Positions 6,442-12,514 of a stretch of 64,000 bases of DNA are shown in pieces. The DNA is taken from the IMG/VR virus record IMGVR_UViG_3300021197_001489, positions 124,001-188,000 of that record; one strand, written 5' to 3'. The notes beneath the pieces were generated by a model. The model did not search any database, was not told the origin of the DNA, and saw nothing but the letters and a program-made list of their open reading frames with translations. Numbering within the stretch: position 1 is the stretch's first letter; each line of letters starts with the position of its first letter. A program made the position numbers and the translations under genes.

Positions 6442-8199
6442 ATGATACAACTTAAAGATCTCACAGTTAAAAACTTCATGAGTGTGGGCAACGCCACACA
6501 AGCTATCAACTTTGATCGACAAGATCTCACATTGGTTCTAGGTGAAAACTTGGACCTTGGCGGCGATGGCAGCCGGAACGGCACTGGCAAGACCACTATC
6601 ATCAATGCACTAAGCTATGCACTGTACGGACAAGCACTGACAAATATCCGACGTGACAACTTGATTAACAAGACCAACAGCAAAGGCATGATGGTTAGTT
6701 TGGATTTCTGTGTTGGTGAACAGTGTTACAGGATTGAGCGCGGTCGTAAACCAAATGTGTTAAAGTTTTATATCAACGACAGTGAACAAGAATCAGACGA
6801 CAATGCACAAGGTGATAGTAGAGAAACACAAGGCGCTATTGAAAAACTGTTAAGCATGAGTCACACTATGTTTAAACACTTGGTAGCATTGAACACATAC
6901 ACCGAACCGTTTTTAAGTCTTAAACAAAACGATCAAAGAGAAATAATTGAACAACTGCTGGGTATAACCTTGCTCAGTGAACGTGCTGACAAGATCAAAG
7001 ATCTAAGCAAGCAAACCAAGGATTCAATCAAAGAAGAAGAAATGTCAATCCGTGCATTGCAAAATGCCAATGACAAAATAGGTGAACAAGTTGAAGCACT
7101 CAAGCGTAGACAAACACTGTGGCAAAACAAAAAAACAGAAGACACAGCCAAGTTCGAACGTGCTATTGAAGACTTAGCACATGTAGACATTGATGAGGAA
7201 CTTAGAGCACACACCGAACTTGCTGACTGGAATACGCTCAACAACGAACAGACACAATTACAAAAAGACATTGCGGCATTGCAAGCACAAGTTAGCAGAG
7301 CTGAACGTGATGTGAAAAAAGCAAACAAAGCTCTGGTAGGATGGCAAGACGGAGTTTGTCACAGTTGCAACCAAAGCATTGAACACTTGGATAGCCACAA
7401 ACAAGAAATTGAAAAGGCAGAGAAGGAACATGACGAAGCAAATAATTTCCTTGGAGAACTACAAGAAGGAATTGAAACGCTCTCAGCTGGAAAAACAGAT
7501 GTCCCAGCAAAACCACGCACTTTCTATGATAGCGCCAATGATGCACACAACCATCGTTCAAGCCTATCAGCACTGGAATTACAACTACAAAATAAACAAG
7601 ATGAAAGTGACCCTTACACCGATCAAATAGCAGACATGGAAACATCAGCAGTGCAAGAAGTTAGCTATGACAAACTCAACGACCTAACACGGTTGCACGA
7701 ACATCAAGACTTCTTGCTCAAACTGTTAACCAACAAAGACAGCTTTGTGCGCAAACGTATCATTGATCAAAATCTAAGTTACTTGAATTCAAGACTAACA
7801 CACTACTTGGACAGAATTGGATTGCCGCACACTGTGATATTCCAGAACGACCTAACTGTAGAGATTCAAGAGCTAGGCAGAGACTTAGACTTTGACAATC
7901 TATCAAGAGGTGAACGTAACAGACTTATACTGAGTATGAGTTGGGCGTTCCGTGATGTATGGGAGAGTTTGTATGGTGCAATCAACTTGCTGTTCATTGA
8001 TGAACTGGTTGATTCGGGTATGGATACATCAGGTGTAGAAGCAAGTTTAGCACTGCTTAAGAAGATGGCCCGTGAACGTGACAAGAGTATTTGGTTAGTA
8101 TCGCACAAGGACGAGCTTGCAGGGCGTGTAAACAACTTGCTTAAAGTTGTCAAAGAAAACGGCTTTACCAGCTATAACACAGATGTTGAAATACTATGA
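6442..8199 (+). CDS. gp46: Recombination ATPase subunit (Rad50/SbcC-like, T4 gp46)
   Basis: Walker A 'NGTGKTT', coiled coil with CHSC zinc hook, signature 'LSRGE', Walker B 'LLFIDE', H-loop 'VSH'. Confidence 0.95.
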   Translation: MIQLKDLTVKNFMSVGNATQAINFDRQDLTLVLGENLDLGGDGSRNGTGKTTIINALSYALYGQALTNIRRDNLINKTNSKGMMVSLDFCVGEQCYRIERGRKPNVLKFYINDSEQESDDNAQGDSRETQGAIEKLLSMSHTMFKHLVALNTYTEPFLSLKQNDQREIIEQLLGITLLSERADKIKDLSKQTKDSIKEEEMSIRALQNANDKIGEQVEALKRRQTLWQNKKTEDTAKFERAIEDLAHVDIDEELRAHTELADWNTLNNEQTQLQKDIAALQAQVSRAERDVKKANKALVGWQDGVCHSCNQSIEHLDSHKQEIEKAEKEHDEANNFLGELQEGIETLSAGKTDVPAKPRTFYDSANDAHNHRSSLSALELQLQNKQDESDPYTDQIADMETSAVQEVSYDKLNDLTRLHEHQDFLLKLLTNKDSFVRKRIIDQNLSYLNSRLTHYLDRIGLPHTVIFQNDLTVEIQELGRDLDFDNLSRGERNRLILSMSWAFRDVWESLYGAINLLFIDELVDSGMDTSGVEASLALLKKMARERDKSIWLVSHKDELAGRVNNLLKVVKENGFTSYNTDVEIL

Positions 8200-9227
8200 G
8201 CCTAGCACTGGATCACTGGCATATTGAAGTAAGCAGCGTTTGCACATTGCAGTGCCCGCGATGTACTCGTGCTGAAGTTCCAGAAACACTGCTTAACCGA
8301 AATCTCAATTTAAAATTTTTTCAAGAACAAATCGGTGAAGAATGGATAACAAAAATTCGCAAAATCACATTCTGTGGCGACGATGGTGATCCAATCTATG
8401 CCAAACAGTTTATCGAAATTGTTGAATGGATCAAAACGGTTAATCCTGATATTCAGCTCTTGATTATCACCAACGGCAGTTATAAAACTGCTGATTGGTG
8501 GCATCGTCTTGCTTGTGTACTCAATGAAAATGACGAGGTTCATTGGAGTTTAGACGGCTGGAATCAAGATAGCAACAGCAAATACAGAGTAAACTGCGAC
8601 TGGGCAAGTATTATGTTGGGCATAATAACTTTTCGTGTTTACAACAAAACCACATACACCGTGGTGGCAAGTATAGCATTTAGATTCAACGAAAACAACT
8701 TGCAAGATATAAAACAGATTGCAACAGATAACAATTTTGATTGTTGGCAACTTACAAAAAGTACAAAATTTGGTAGCAAATATCCAGTCGCTTATGGCAC
8801 AGACGACTTGCTAGAGCCTCTAGATACTGAATTGGTTGCGGCAGGACATCGTTTTGAAAGAACACAATACCCACTGAGCGACAAAACTCGACCAGGAAGC
8901 GATCTCAAAGAGTTGTTTTGGCAACGTGCGCAAAAATTAAATGCAAGCGACGAGTATCCTGCATTGTGCTATATCGGCAATAAAGGTGTATTTTTAAAAA
9001 GCACAGGAGAATTTTATCCGTGTTGCTGGACAGCATTACGCTATCCACATAATACAAAGTGGATCGAGCTTGCAGAAACCAAATTTAACCTGTACAATAG
9101 CACATTGGATCAGATACTAGATGATCCATGGTGGAGTACAGAATTTAGGCAGTTTGACAATCTAGAATGCAAAACAAAATGTATTAAAAGCAAACTTTTG
9201 GATCAGGCTCATGTCACAGAGTGGTAA
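8196..9227 (+). CDS. Radical SAM protein with C-terminal SPASM/twitch-like cysteines
   Basis: CxxxCxxC motif (CTLQCPRC), 'FCGDDGDP', and C-terminal 'CYIG...YPCCW...CKTKC'. Confidence 0.85.
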   Translation: MSLALDHWHIEVSSVCTLQCPRCTRAEVPETLLNRNLNLKFFQEQIGEEWITKIRKITFCGDDGDPIYAKQFIEIVEWIKTVNPDIQLLIITNGSYKTADWWHRLACVLNENDEVHWSLDGWNQDSNSKYRVNCDWASIMLGIITFRVYNKTTYTVVASIAFRFNENNLQDIKQIATDNNFDCWQLTKSTKFGSKYPVAYGTDDLLEPLDTELVAAGHRFERTQYPLSDKTRPGSDLKELFWQRAQKLNASDEYPALCYIGNKGVFLKSTGEFYPCCWTALRYPHNTKWIELAETKFNLYNSTLDQILDDPWWSTEFRQFDNLECKTKCIKSKLLDQAHVTEW

Positions 9228-9235
9228 CTATCACT

Positions 9236-9643
9236 ATGACATGGTACTACCAAGACAAAGAAGTAACTGATATTCCAGAAGGAGCAATTGGATTTGTGTA
9301 CATAATCACCAATCTTGTAGACAATCGCAAGTATATTGGCAAGAAATTGGCACAGTTTAAGCGCAGTAGAAAACCACTCAAAGGCAGAAAAAACAAACGC
9401 AGATACACAGTTACATCAGATTGGCAAGACTATTATGGCAGCAGCGATGCACTTACTGCGGATGTCGAACTGCTAGGCAAAGACAAGTTTAAACGCGAAA
9501 TAATGTTTTGGTGTGCAAGCAAAAGCGAACTTAGCTATGTTGAAGCAAGAGAACAATTTGCACACCGAGTATTAGAAAGCAAAGACTGGTATAACGGACA
9601 TATACAGGTTCGGGTACACCAAAAAGGCATACTAAAGGAATAA
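9236..9643 (+). CDS. Small GIY-YIG (Seg-like) endonuclease
   Basis: 'GFVYIITNLVDNRKYIGKK...YYGSS...E...WYNGHI'. ATG at 9236 gives 135 aa. Confidence 0.85.
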   Translation: MTWYYQDKEVTDIPEGAIGFVYIITNLVDNRKYIGKKLAQFKRSRKPLKGRKNKRRYTVTSDWQDYYGSSDALTADVELLGKDKFKREIMFWCASKSELSYVEAREQFAHRVLESKDWYNGHIQVRVHQKGILKE

Positions 9644-10187
9644 ATTTACAGGCAAATGATAACTAGCATAAACACTTATGCACAGGCACACTCAGAGCAA
9701 TGCTCAACTTTCTCTTTTAAATTTCCCAGCTAACATCGGAACACTGATTGGTCGGAATAGTTCGACTCACCTTGCAGTCTGCCAGCAGAAATGTTGTAGC
9801 CGTCAGAACTGGTGCGTTCCAAGGACATAGCTAACTATAGGCTAAAATGACATGGGCTCTGTGAAACAGATACAACCCATGCCCGAAGATACTTTGCTTG
9901 AAGGGGTATACAAGGGTTCCGTTGCGAGTCAAGGCTAGAGTAGGAGGTACAGCGTAACCGCCTCCGTACACAATTGTAATCTCTTTATTCAAGTGACTGA
10001 CACGACTCAGATGATGACTTTCAGTTTATGCTTGCCCTGTGTAAGGGCAAGTATGACCAAAAAATCTAGATGATAACGGAACGCTTCGCTTTGCTCGCGT
10101 GTTAACAGTATTGCTGAGCGTTAGCGATAGCAATAGATGTCTTTAGACATCTCGATAAGTTATTATTAAAACTTTGTGATTGTTATT
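9644..10187 (+). ncRNA. Candidate large structured ncRNA (unknown family)
   Basis: ~540 nt with no ORF of 60 aa or more in an otherwise gene-dense genome. It has about ten stems, a GAAA tetraloop, G-U pairs and long-range pairings (see findings). Strand is inferred from operon direction. Confidence 0.55.
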
Positions 10188-10511
10188 TTAGTATTGGTCT
10201 GGCCAATCTCTATATAGCAAATGTTGAATTGTTTCCATATCAACCATTTGGTTAAAGCCGTGATGCTTTTCTTCGATGTTGTCTGTGTCTGTAACCACAT
10301 GCTTCATGGCATCGTCAAGGTCTTGCATGTTTTTGAATTCCATGTCAATGCGCCACTCACCAACATCCATGCTCCTGAAGCCCAGTTTCATTCTGGTAAT
10401 ACGATAGCTTTGCATGGTAGGCAGTGCATCCAAGAACTTTTTCATATTGGTTACAAATTCATGTGGGTTAACGCCTTCTTTTACGTCACAGTAGATAGTG
10501 TAAACGTCCAT
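10188..10511 (-). CDS. Small alpha/beta-barrel-like protein (recalls DUF6614-type proteins)
   Basis: 'MDVYTIYCD...YRITRMKLGF...LYRDWPD'; family call from memory, unverified. Confidence 0.5.
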   Translation of the reverse strand: MDVYTIYCDVKEGVNPHEFVTNMKKFLDALPTMQSYRITRMKLGFRSMDVGEWRIDMEFKNMQDLDDAMKHVVTDTDNIEEKHHGFNQMVDMETIQHLLYRDWPDQY

Positions 10512-10963
10512 TATTTGACTCCTAAGTTGTCTGATGGAAATATTGTGAATCCATCTATTTGTTTCTTGTATTCATGTGCTTCGCCTAGTATTATCAACTC
10601 GTAACCCAACTCTTTGTATATTGCACATTCGGTTTTCATACTAGCAATGCCCAGTTTCAGTTTTGGATTGCGATAATCCCATGCAAACTGTAGAGCTTCA
10701 ACTGCTCGATTGTTTATCTTGTACATCATACTCCAGGCAACAAGGTCGTTGTTGTCGTAGTATGCTATTATGTCGTTGTGTTCTGCTACAAACTCTTCTT
10801 GATAGATTGGCCACACACTTTTGAATTTTTTATAATCAGCATACTGTTGATAGATTGTGAGCATTTGACTGGTTTTGGCATATCTTTCGTCTTGCAACAA
10901 TATCTTGTGATTGGTTTCTGCTGTGTAGTCAGTATCTGCGAGGTTTATGTAGCAGTAAGTCAT
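10511..10963 (-). CDS. GNAT-fold protein resembling the C-terminal domain of aminoacyl-tRNA-protein transferases (ATE/Bpt-like)
   Basis: 'IAYYDNNDLVAWS...QFAWDYRNPKLKLG...E...KELGYELIILGEAHEYK'. Confidence 0.55.
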   Translation of the reverse strand: MTYCYINLADTDYTAETNHKILLQDERYAKTSQMLTIYQQYADYKKFKSVWPIYQEEFVAEHNDIIAYYDNNDLVAWSMMYKINNRAVEALQFAWDYRNPKLKLGIASMKTECAIYKELGYELIILGEAHEYKKQIDGFTIFPSDNLGVK

Positions 10964-11460
10964 CTTGGGTCTTCTCTGTTTGTAAACAAACCTTGCAAAT
11001 ACTGTTCATCCCAGCCATTGTAAAAACCTTTTTTACCAAGCAGCTTGGCATGACTGTGTAATTTGCTGAGGCTTTGCACCAATGCTAGTGCATACTTACC
11101 CTGATTGAACTGTACCCCTTTGACCATTTCTACATTTTCTGGATGATCAGCCAGTGCCAACATGTCTATGGGTACCAGTGTTTCTTCGTTGATGCTGTCA
11201 ACTGCATCTTCAAAATCGTCTGGTGCATACCCTTGTGGATTGTATGCATAAATGTACACATCTTGGTCTCCCATGCCTTCTTGTGCAACATCTAGCATGT
11301 CAGCGTACAAATCTGTTCCGATACGCACAGTGTACTTGTTTTCCAGACGTGCTTTTCTGGCATAAGGGCATGGTGCCCAGTTGCCCAGTGCAGGATGCGG
11401 CACTTCTACAAAGTTGATCAACCAAGATTCAATGTCAGCTTTTACGTCATCTATTACCAA
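10960..11460 (-). CDS. DUF1415-like protein
   Basis: 'W...FVE......LGNWAPCPYARKA' and 'ADHP' resemble the family's CPFA and FHP motifs. Confidence 0.5.
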   Translation of the reverse strand: MVIDDVKADIESWLINFVEVPHPALGNWAPCPYARKARLENKYTVRIGTDLYADMLDVAQEGMGDQDVYIYAYNPQGYAPDDFEDAVDSINEETLVPIDMLALADHPENVEMVKGVQFNQGKYALALVQSLSKLHSHAKLLGKKGFYNGWDEQYLQGLFTNREDPR

Positions 11461-11630
11461 AACGGTTGTCCAGTCTTTTTTGCAGTCTCAAGGTTCTCTT
11501 TGATTAACTTGCCCATTGATTCGCGTTCACTTACGCTCATTTGTACAATCTCACTGTAAGTCACACCACCTCGCATAAACCAGCAAATCTTGAGCATGTC
11601 TTCTTTGAGGCCCTTAACTTCTTTGTCCAT
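11454..11630 (-). CDS. Small baseplate/tail assembly chaperone-like ORF (gp51- or gpT-like); possibly made mainly as a frameshift extension
   Basis: 'ICWFMRGGVTYSEIVQMSVSERE'. The ATG at 11630 has a weak RBS, and the frame stays open upstream across the gp26-like stop. Confidence 0.6.
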   Translation of the reverse strand: MDKEVKGLKEDMLKICWFMRGGVTYSEIVQMSVSERESMGKLIKENLETAKKTGQPFW

Positions 11631-11677
11631 CTTTTCAACTATGTGTTCAATTTCGTCGGGGGATGATGTTAAGAGCC

Positions 11678-12514
11678 TTATACGAAAAAATTTGCAACAT
11701 TCATTGTGAATGGTGTGTCGTATTCGTGTTTGCAATCTGCACAAGTAATATGCAGCGGTTCTACTGCGCCAGTTTGCTTGATGTCTTCAATTTTCTTGCG
11801 AATCTTATCAAATGCTTTGCTTTCGCAGTTGCGAATGTATTCTTCAATGTGGTCTTTGTCCACAACAAGGTCATCACCAGCTTTGATCATGCTAATGCTT
11901 TGGGAAATGGCACTCAGTGTTAAATGACTGATATTTGTGAATGCTTGTTGTAACAGTTCTAGTTTTTCAGATTCAGGAATTTCCGCGGTTGGCAGCGTCT
12001 CTAACATTTTTTGGTCTTGAAACTGTGCAGAGTTGTTTTCGTTTTGTTCTTTGTAGGTAAGTGGGCGAAAGTGTATTTCGACATCTCCTGCAACAACTGG
12101 CTGTGAAAAGTCTGGTGACTTTATCCGTTCCATAATATCTCTTAGATCAATAGCAAAGTTGTTTTCTTCTTCACATTTTGGACACTTGCTGGTAAATTCC
12201 ATTTCATGCCCATAACTGGCTATTCTCATAGCAATCAACAGTGTGTCAAGATCCAATGTACTGGTCTGCCAAGCGTCTTTGTATGCAGGAACACAGCTTT
12301 CAATAACACTGGCAATGGCACTGCCGTTAAACAGCGCATCAGCAGTTCTATATGTAATCTCATCCAGTGCTGTCATTGGGTAGATTGGCAATTCGCCGTT
12401 TTCTGGCATTGTCAACTGTGACTCGTCATTGAAGGCGCCGCCACTGGGTAACTTGATATAGATGCTGGGTTGCCTGAAATGTTTTGCCAGCGGATTTGGG
12501 TTAGTGTTTGACAT
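11678..12514 (-). CDS. gp26: Baseplate hub assembly protein (T4 gp26-like)
   Basis: 'NPLAKHFRQPSIYIKLPSGG...MTALDE', two CxxC pairs (CPKC, CADC); likely ATG at 12514. Confidence 0.8.
   Translation of the reverse strand: MSNTNPNPLAKHFRQPSIYIKLPSGGAFNDESQLTMPENGELPIYPMTALDEITYRTADALFNGSAIASVIESCVPAYKDAWQTSTLDLDTLLIAMRIASYGHEMEFTSKCPKCEEENNFAIDLRDIMERIKSPDFSQPVVAGDVEIHFRPLTYKEQNENNSAQFQDQKMLETLPTAEIPESEKLELLQQAFTNISHLTLSAISQSISMIKAGDDLVVDKDHIEEYIRNCESKAFDKIRKKIEDIKQTGAVEPLHITCADCKHEYDTPFTMNVANFFV
11684..11693 (-). promoter_or_regulatory. Putative -1 programmed frameshift site (A AAT TTT TTC)
   Basis: Two overlapping X XXY YYZ heptamers in the correct phase, ending one codon before the gp26-like stop; the -1 frame is open for 76 more codons. 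Confidence 0.6.

Follow-up and report, generated by a model that had tools for sequence, protein, structure and literature searches.

A GIY-YIG nuclease gene and an adjoining large structured RNA in a T4-like gene block of an uncultured virus

Results

The locus and its setting

The stretch of DNA analysed here, hereafter the window, comprises 64,000 nucleotides (bases 124001-188000) of the IMG/VR record IMGVR_UViG_3300021197_001489, a 316-kb, 91%-complete uncultured virus. On its plus strand, an open reading frame that starts with ATG at 9236 and stops with TAA at 9641-9643 encodes a GIY-YIG nuclease of 135 residues. A gap of 544 nt (9644-10187) separates this gene from a convergent DUF6614 gene, and within the gap lies a structured RNA gene of about 495 nt. 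The features discussed below are as follows.

9236..9643, plus strand: GIY-YIG nuclease gene, 135 aa, catalytic domain only (Pfam, PHROG, AlphaFold2, Foldseek)
9341..9406, plus strand: basic segment KKLAQFKRSRKPLKGRKNKRRY, residues 36-57, modelled as a beta-hairpin; family-wide, RNA-less homologues included
9660..10155, plus strand: structured RNA gene, about 495 nt (conservation, covariation; profile match 9667-10152)
9660..9845, plus strand: clade-specific 5' domain of the RNA; its equivalent in clade C is Rfam RF01718, with no match in the window
9851..9881, plus strand: helix P1 (9851-9856 with 9876-9881), with a UGAAA-capped inner hairpin; 5 of 6 pairs change on both sides
9882..9916, plus strand: helix P2, whose loop CUUGAA (9897-9902) is the 5' strand of pseudoknot PK1
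9943..9965, plus strand: helix P3, with the near-universal loop UACMGSNNRACCG; 21 complementary stem variants, 90% paired
9988..9993, plus strand: 3' strand of PK1, UUCAAG (per-sequence duplex test)
10005..10015, plus strand: twin 1, ACUC followed by the 7-nt word X1 (AGAUGAU)
10031..10051, plus strand: hairpin P5, between the twins; best helix 9.55 versus 5.58 shuffled, 54 distinct stems
10064..10074, plus strand: twin 2, AUCU followed by X2 (AGAUGAU), identical to X1
10110..10134, plus strand: helix P7 around the conserved GAGCGNNAGCGA (10116-10127); two-sided changes in 6 of 6 outer pairs, inner part 96% paired
10135..10152, plus strand: terminal hairpin P8 (per-sequence helix test); terminator-like in clade B (L040), not in the window

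According to Pfam, a Metallophos (gp47-like) gene and a 585-aa SMC/AAA_23 (gp46-like) gene lie on the 5' side of the nuclease gene, and a T4_baseplate-family gene lies on the 3' side of the RNA. These neighbouring genes identify the source, an uncultured marine phage, as a T4-like myovirus. The neighbourhood is a conserved T4-like gene block: among 145 distinct loci of the RNA, at least 100 carry the gp46-like gene on the upstream side, 95 carry the baseplate-family gene on the downstream side, and the small genes between these anchors are variable.

Three small genes on the minus strand (10188-11460) are convergent with the RNA: the DUF6614 gene (E = 1e-20), a gene weakly similar to the C-terminal part of Arg-tRNA-protein transferase (E = 1e-3), and one for a 166-aa phrog_28122 protein. 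Each was found in just 36-47 of the 145 loci. Between the gp46-like gene and the nuclease gene, the plus strand also carries a radical SAM/SPASM-like gene (8196-9227; weak Pfam scores; phrog_21308). A metatranscriptome contig (run X16) joins position 8176 straight to 9235, indicating that some relatives lack this gene.

The nuclease is a GIY-YIG catalytic domain

The Pfam profile PF19835 (SegE_GIY-YIG) was matched by residues 3-123 over positions 1-123 of its 123 (E = 6.8e-35); GIY-YIG families were the sole matches in the Pfam search of the 135-aa protein, and no second domain was found there. In the AlphaFold2 model (22 homologues; pLDDT 87), residues 124-135 are disordered. The best solved-structure match of the model was the catalytic domain of I-TevI (1LN0), a weak one (probability 0.92, Foldseek E = 0.23); no solved structure was matched at Foldseek E <= 0.001, and none by sequence search. 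The near-complete coverage by PF19835, the disordered tail and the fold match to the I-TevI domain together indicate that the protein consists of the catalytic domain only, which bears out the description in an earlier note, made from the letters of the window, of a protein that is essentially the catalytic domain alone.

The two signature motifs, set roughly 10 residues apart near the N-terminus, are GFVY (residues 19-22) and KYIG (residues 32-35), in which Y22, Y33 and G35 are invariant among the 22 homologues, as are the catalytic residues R87, E103 and N120. With these paired motifs, the catalytic Arg, Glu and Asn and an alpha/beta fold, the protein belongs to the GIY-YIG superfamily. It is a member of phrog_447, the family of P-SSM2 PSSM2_218 (cyanophage gene cluster T4-GC 213), which is present in 514 isolate phage records; the nearest isolate homologues are from Methylophilales phage Melnitz (58% identity) and cyanophages. 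The label of phrog_447, 'NAD synthetase', is a misnomer that neither Pfam nor the predicted fold supports. This label has been copied into many isolate records (e.g. NC_006883.2 PSSM2_218 and KR052482.1 PHIN3_314), where the mis-annotation of this GIY-YIG family can now be corrected.

The Arg/Lys-rich insert to which the earlier note drew attention is present as KKLAQFKRSRKPLKGRKNKRRY and is an insertion relative to I-TevI. In the model, strands 40-44 and 56-60 make this basic segment a beta-hairpin. The PF19835 profile spans it ungapped, and its conservation is just as high in the RNA-less homologues of Melnitz, Sinorhizobium phage phiN3, P-SSM2, L026 and L053, which indicates that it is a feature of the family and not an adaptation to the RNA. 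The idea, put forward in the earlier note, that the insert binds the adjacent RNA and so founds a ribonucleoprotein is therefore not supported, and an obligate ribonucleoprotein resting on the insert is unlikely. On the first of the readings discussed below, the basic hairpin would most likely contact DNA.

The gap encodes a large, covarying RNA

The sequence of the gap is conserved in relatives at 74-80% identity across about 500 nt, and the combination of BLAST and an iterated nucleotide profile detected the RNA in 61 of 80 viral contigs that encode relatives of the protein. The small open reading frames in the gap showed no third-position bias and were broken in 11-12 of 12 close relatives. 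A coding remnant, such as a decayed C-terminal domain of the nuclease, was rejected on these two grounds. Rfam and tRNA searches of the gap and its surroundings yielded no tRNA, tmRNA, group I intron or other known RNA. The folding energy of the gap was mildly better than that of shuffled sequences (z = -2.3 for the plus strand and -2.1 for the minus strand). The covarying hairpins carry GNRA loops on the plus strand, suggesting that this is the sense strand of the RNA.

Covariation was tested on two alignments of 39-40 sequences each, with 500 shuffles per alignment. The score was 0.355 versus 0.168 for shuffled sequences in the first alignment, where 18 of 21 pairs change on both sides, and 0.310 versus 0.166 in the second, where 16 of 22 do so; none of the 500 shuffles reached the observed score in either case, and slid controls scored below the true pairings. 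These results show that the RNA noticed beside the nuclease gene in the earlier note is real: it is non-coding, covarying and conserved.

The RNA consists of a conserved core of about 340 nt and a 5' domain that varies by clade. In the core, the loop of P2 pairs with the stretch preceding a GUGAC word to form PK1. The best PK1 duplex averaged 7.25 nt, versus 4.88 nt for shuffled strands and 5.18 nt with the strand of another RNA, and 62 distinct duplexes were found in 92 RNAs. For P5 and P8, column-based counts were poor (63% and 42% paired, respectively) because changes in loop length shift the MAFFT register, and per-sequence helix tests were used instead; these support both hairpins. In clade C loci (e.g. 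L094 and L116), a word resembling TATAAATA, the T4 late-promoter consensus, lies just 3' of P8 and before the next gene, where it marks the 3' border of the RNA.

Two identical segments vary by lineage

The two twin segments carry the same 7 nt as each other in 153 RNAs, in 21 variants and with a spacing of 48-88 nt. The variation is confined mainly to positions 1 and 5, which are A or G and always match between the two copies. An exact complement of the twins at any fixed place was not found within 3 kb, and complementarity within 420 nt showed no excess over a mismatched control.

Several readings of the twins were tried and rejected. Two stems, M1 and M2, that would set the twins in hairpin loops were no better than shuffled sequences (5.45 versus 5.22 and 5.17 versus 5.01, respectively), and the box C/D, CsrA-type GGA and anticodon-loop readings each fitted some variants only. 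A guide-like variable segment, for which the earlier note had suggested looking, is thus present in part: the twins vary by lineage and have no internal partner, but they are 7-nt words inside the RNA, with most changes at two purine positions, and do not form a guide at its end.

The RNA is a long relative of Polynucleobacter-1 RNA

In the clade C relatives L075, L064 and L052, the stretch from the stop codon of the nuclease gene to the core is Rfam RF01718, the Polynucleobacter-1 RNA (114-121 bits). The same model, whose threshold is 37 bits, gave no match at E <= 1 in positions 8000-12000 of the window. An iterated nucleotide profile links the core of the window's RNA to those of L075 and L064 (E = 1e-40 to 1e-46), and the core motifs are also present in a Polynucleobacter chromosome copy. 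On these sequence similarities, the RNA of the window is a long relative of the orphan Polynucleobacter-1 RNA.

When that RNA was described in 2010, its examples were noted to lie mostly downstream of a gene family, GOS11034, 'with possible homology to PSSM2_218' (Weinberg et al. 2010, supplement, PMC2864571). The family was not recognised as a nuclease, no example was found in purified phages, and the 340-nt core appeared only as unaligned flank in the alignment file (PMC2864571). PSSM2_218 is the P-SSM2 homologue of the 135-aa protein, so that the RNA of the window likewise lies downstream of a gene of the GOS11034/PSSM2_218 family. The association of gene and RNA is therefore not new (PMC2864571), and the earlier note's term 'undescribed' does not wholly fit the pairing. 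The new points are that the gene is recognised to encode a nuclease, that the RNA has a large conserved core, and how extensive the association is. The 3' core, the pseudoknot and the co-varying identical 7-nt twins are absent from the Rfam model.

The gene and the RNA are tightly linked

Linkage was examined in both directions. Starting from the protein, the RNA was found to adjoin the nuclease gene in 61 of 80 relatives. For the reverse direction, viral contigs were scanned with a motif of the RNA only, which located at least 120 places, 120 of 120 of them confirmed by the profile; 10 of these loci end too early to tell, leaving 110 informative ones. The GIY-YIG gene lies on the 5' side of the RNA in 100 of the 110 (89 on the same strand and 11 divergent), a proportion that may overstate the association since the motif derives from GIY-linked RNAs and fails to detect divergent copies, those of Polynucleobacter among them; separability is not understated by it. 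The other 10 loci have room for a GIY-YIG gene and lack one, and none of the RNA-motif loci has such a gene on the 3' side of the RNA in either orientation. The co-occurrence across genomes that the earlier note proposed to examine is thus strong both ways. A further sample, drawn via the baseplate gene, contained only clade A relatives, all of which held both gene and RNA where they had enough sequence, and is uninformative.

The distance between gene and RNA is usually 25-250 nt, whereas the genes that flank the pair on either side vary. In 32 loci, the RNA and the nuclease gene are divergent, and in one of the divergent cases, L103, the pair was apparently inverted as one unit. Distances between the proteins and between the RNAs are correlated (Mantel rho 0.52, reached by 0 of 500 permutations), and the gene has diverged along with the RNA down to about 45% identity. 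This correlation is as expected under joint vertical descent; together with the synteny of the block, it suggests that much of the adjacency can be inherited gene order. The pair of gene and RNA is nevertheless tighter than the rest of the block.

In seven loci (L005, L014, L110, L111, L123, L157 and L199), ORFs of 257-356 aa without a Pfam match lie between the nuclease gene and the RNA, and several of these share similar N-termini (e.g. ...AGCSFTAGSGW...).

Each occurs without the other

A BLAST search with RNAs of three clades found no match in isolate phages. In four isolate loci (Melnitz, phiN3, P-HM2 and P-SSM2), the nuclease family stands in other contexts, with no room for the RNA and no RNA motif. 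Likewise, no RNA was found within 3 kb of the gene in L026/27, whose protein is 75% identical, or in the Melnitz-like loci L053-L079.

Conversely, the RNA occurs without the GIY-YIG gene. In 6 of the 10 RNA loci that lack it, a PDDEXK_15 nuclease of about 170 aa occupies the GIY-YIG slot. These genes (PF24608; phrog_244, 'RusA-like Holliday junction resolvase') are at L095:6475-6987 (minus strand), L131, L137, L117, L175 and L195. L095 belongs to clade A and is a close relative of the phage studied here, and its RNA clusters with that of the window; there, PDDEXK_15 replaces GIY-YIG. The distribution suggests that the two nucleases are mutually exclusive in the records searched. The RNAs beside PDDEXK_15 and those beside GIY-YIG carry the same kinds of twins.

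In addition, 13-14 of 121 Polynucleobacter genomes contain RF01718, in some cases as two copies; the complete chromosome cited in 2010 is among them. The RNA is present there in full, with both RF01718 and the core, and paired copies are sometimes about 18 kb apart. In all five chromosomal copies examined, a divergent DUF6641 (phrog_31551) gene lies on the 5' side of the RNA, and no GIY-YIG match was found in the loci of about 3 kb around the copies. The model of DUF6641 matched no solved fold, whether of a nuclease or of any other protein. Near the copies are integrase genes and a tRNA gene, so that the setting looks like a genomic island. The loci include L277:9138-10265 (G042:C1, about 2.13 Mb), L270, L271, L274, L276 and L278; in L277, from Polynucleobacter asymbioticus, the RNA itself spans 9773-10265. 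Upstream of the DUF6641 gene in L277, 1.8 kb (7362-9138) contain no ORF of 80 aa or more and gave no Rfam match at the gathering score. The RNA and the nuclease are thus separable, and the Polynucleobacter strains with a chromosomal RNA offer a cultivable handle on it.

The exchange of nucleases in one slot also bears on homing. Homing endonuclease genes of phages adjoin conserved genes, and their cleavage sites are close to where they are inserted; selfish free-standing nuclease genes might have settled by a conserved RNA gene, with no role for the RNA beyond the possibility that its gene or a nearby site serves as the cleavage target. The catalytic domain is of the SegE/I-TevI type, PHROG homing-endonuclease families match the protein at about 1e-11, and the slot holds two unrelated nuclease families, in both orientations and with extra ORFs inserted nearby; these points speak for homing. 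However, the protein lacks the DNA-binding domain that Seg enzymes and I-TevI need to recognise their targets, and its gene, which is present in about 90% of RNA loci, has diverged jointly with the RNA to about 45% identity and forms a conserved cyanophage cluster (T4-GC 213), does not look sporadic. We regard homing as improbable.

Transcription of the RNA

In members of clades A and C, the RNA lies on the strand of the nuclease gene and begins 6-250 nt past the stop codon of that gene. In the window, no promoter-like site was found between the two, and P8 is not terminator-like. In clade B, by contrast, the RNA strand carries sigma-70-like promoters, and P8 resembles a terminator.

Parts of the RNA were found in at least 18 metatranscriptome runs, and in 8 of 8 runs examined the depth peaked at the RNA (9778-9904). 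Two runs contained pieces of the RNA only, and a third contained nothing but such pieces and one of 73 nt near 8104-8176. A single contig covers both the nuclease gene and the 5' half of the RNA. Since the runs were chosen with the window sequence, depths sum over relatives, and DNA carry-over is possible, this signal is a hint of expression; the contigs are strandless.

The arrangement in clades A and C and the lack of a promoter-like site between the gene and the RNA in the window would suit a cis-acting 3' untranslated part of the nuclease mRNA, serving its stability or regulation, in which the RNA has no function of its own. In contrast, the RNA points away from the gene in the 32 divergent loci, has its own promoter-like sites in clade B, and elsewhere follows other genes or none. 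Its 0.5 kb and pseudoknotted architecture also far exceed known 3' stabilisers. A purely cis-acting role is thus very improbable.

Discussion

The results leave two main readings, in which the nuclease and the RNA work separately or together. We give about an even chance to the first, which we consider the best: two separately functioning neighbours, inherited together in a conserved T4-like block in the order gp47/gp46-like genes, variable small genes, nuclease, RNA, variable small genes and baseplate gene. The first unit would be a stand-alone GIY-YIG DNA nuclease of catalytic domain only, widespread in marine T4-like phages. It would serve as a housekeeping enzyme that processes DNA, possibly through structure-specific cleavage of branched molecules. 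In the 91%-complete genome there is a single GIY-YIG gene, and Endonuclease_7, RusA, RuvC and PDDEXK_15 were not found; these absences, and the placement of its PDDEXK_15 replacement in a resolvase-like PHROG, point to a housekeeping role, and the resolvase-like part of this suggestion is drawn purely from absence. The second unit would be a stable pseudoknotted RNA of about 495 nt, a long relative of Polynucleobacter-1 RNA. In the clade of the window, it would probably be transcribed by read-through from the nuclease gene, and in other clades from its own promoter. It would act alone, presumably through the two identical exposed 7-nt segments meeting a partner in trans.

Four observations that this separate-neighbours reading has to accommodate would also fit a working partnership: the tight, directional pair, the inversion in L103, the swap of nucleases and the unpartnered twins. 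The alternative is therefore a two-component system in which the RNA works with the small nuclease on its 5' side, GIY-YIG or PD-(D/E)XK, and either aims it via the twins, restrains it, scaffolds it or is processed by it. Whichever of the two served as the starting point, the linkage proved tight and directional, and it persists where the gene is inverted (32 loci) or ORFs have been inserted; a nuclease that is not homologous stands in the same slot in 6 loci, including the clade A relative L095, and the two nucleases look mutually exclusive in the records searched. Moreover, the twins always match, vary by lineage and have no internal complement, and one metatranscriptome contig covers the gene and the 5' half of the RNA. 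These points favour cooperation.

On the other side, the nuclease family is common without the RNA and has the same basic segment there, whereas the RNA occurs in bacterial islands beside DUF6641, whose model matches no solved fold. The twins are just 7-8 nt long, with most of their variation at two A/G positions; this would not suffice to specify an address. They are of the same kinds beside PDDEXK_15 as beside GIY-YIG. Furthermore, no RNA-guided GIY-YIG enzyme is known to us as a precedent. The two are near-constant neighbours, yet each is found alone, so that an RNA-guided nuclease is possible and is not the likeliest reading. Overall, cooperation of the two in some form is conceivable, although somewhat doubtful. 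Its more specific version, a two-part system of T4-like phages in which a pseudoknotted RNA of about 0.5 kb with identical lineage-specific segments addresses or gates an interchangeable upstream nuclease (GIY-YIG or PD-(D/E)XK), is rather unlikely. Should the RNA and the nuclease cooperate, no GIY-YIG enzyme before this one would have had an RNA partner; otherwise, the RNA is still one more of the few large RNAs of bacteria and phages without an assigned function.

Comparison with known systems

In I-TevI and the T4 Seg enzymes, which are mobile and occur sporadically, a linker leads to a DNA-binding domain at the C-terminus. The 135-aa protein shares their type of catalytic domain (PF19835, E = 7e-35), and I-TevI is its best, if weak, solved-structure match. 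In contrast to these enzymes, it ends about 10 residues past the catalytic core without a second domain, and its gene is inherited with its neighbourhood. As to sporadic occurrence, the relatives give a mixed picture: GIY-YIG adjoins the RNA in 100 of 110 informative loci and diverges in step with it, but PDDEXK_15 takes its place in the clade A relative L095. T4 endonuclease II (DenA), a stand-alone GIY-YIG enzyme of 136 aa with no separate DNA-binding domain, resembles the protein in size and in the lack of such a domain. It was, however, absent among the 50 fold matches listed for the 135-aa protein, which had no sequence match to solved structures, so that the kinship shown is at most at the level of the superfamily.

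For the OMEGA/HEARO systems (IscB or TnpB with omega RNA), the likeness is a compact nuclease gene beside a large conserved structured RNA. In these systems, one end of a conserved scaffold bears a variable guide, some 16 nt or more in length. The nuclease of the window differs in being GIY-YIG, not RuvC/HNH, and in being common without the RNA. Its RNA neighbour gave no Rfam HEARO match and has no terminal guide, and the RNA ends are conserved or clade-specific structure.

In type III toxin-antitoxin systems (ToxIN-like), tandem near-identical RNA repeats of about 36 nt lie upstream of an endoribonuclease toxin. This class was rejected for the present locus, where two short twins lie inside a unique 0.5-kb RNA downstream of a GIY-YIG gene.

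GOLLD and ROOL are, like the RNA described here, large, intricately folded, phage-borne orphan RNAs found by comparative genomics. The present RNA has no Rfam match to them, is about 0.5 kb long and has a fixed position by a nuclease gene.

A further counterpart is Polynucleobacter-1 RNA itself. The Rfam model comprises 141 nt from 16 examples, without the core P1-P8, the pseudoknot and the twins, and the 5' domain of the window does not match it. In clade C, however, RF01718 is the 5' domain of the same larger RNA; both RNAs lie downstream of the same GIY-YIG family, and neither has an assigned function. A 15-year-old orphan RNA motif is thus one domain of a far larger, widespread and highly structured phage RNA, and the habitual neighbour of that orphan is a nuclease gene.
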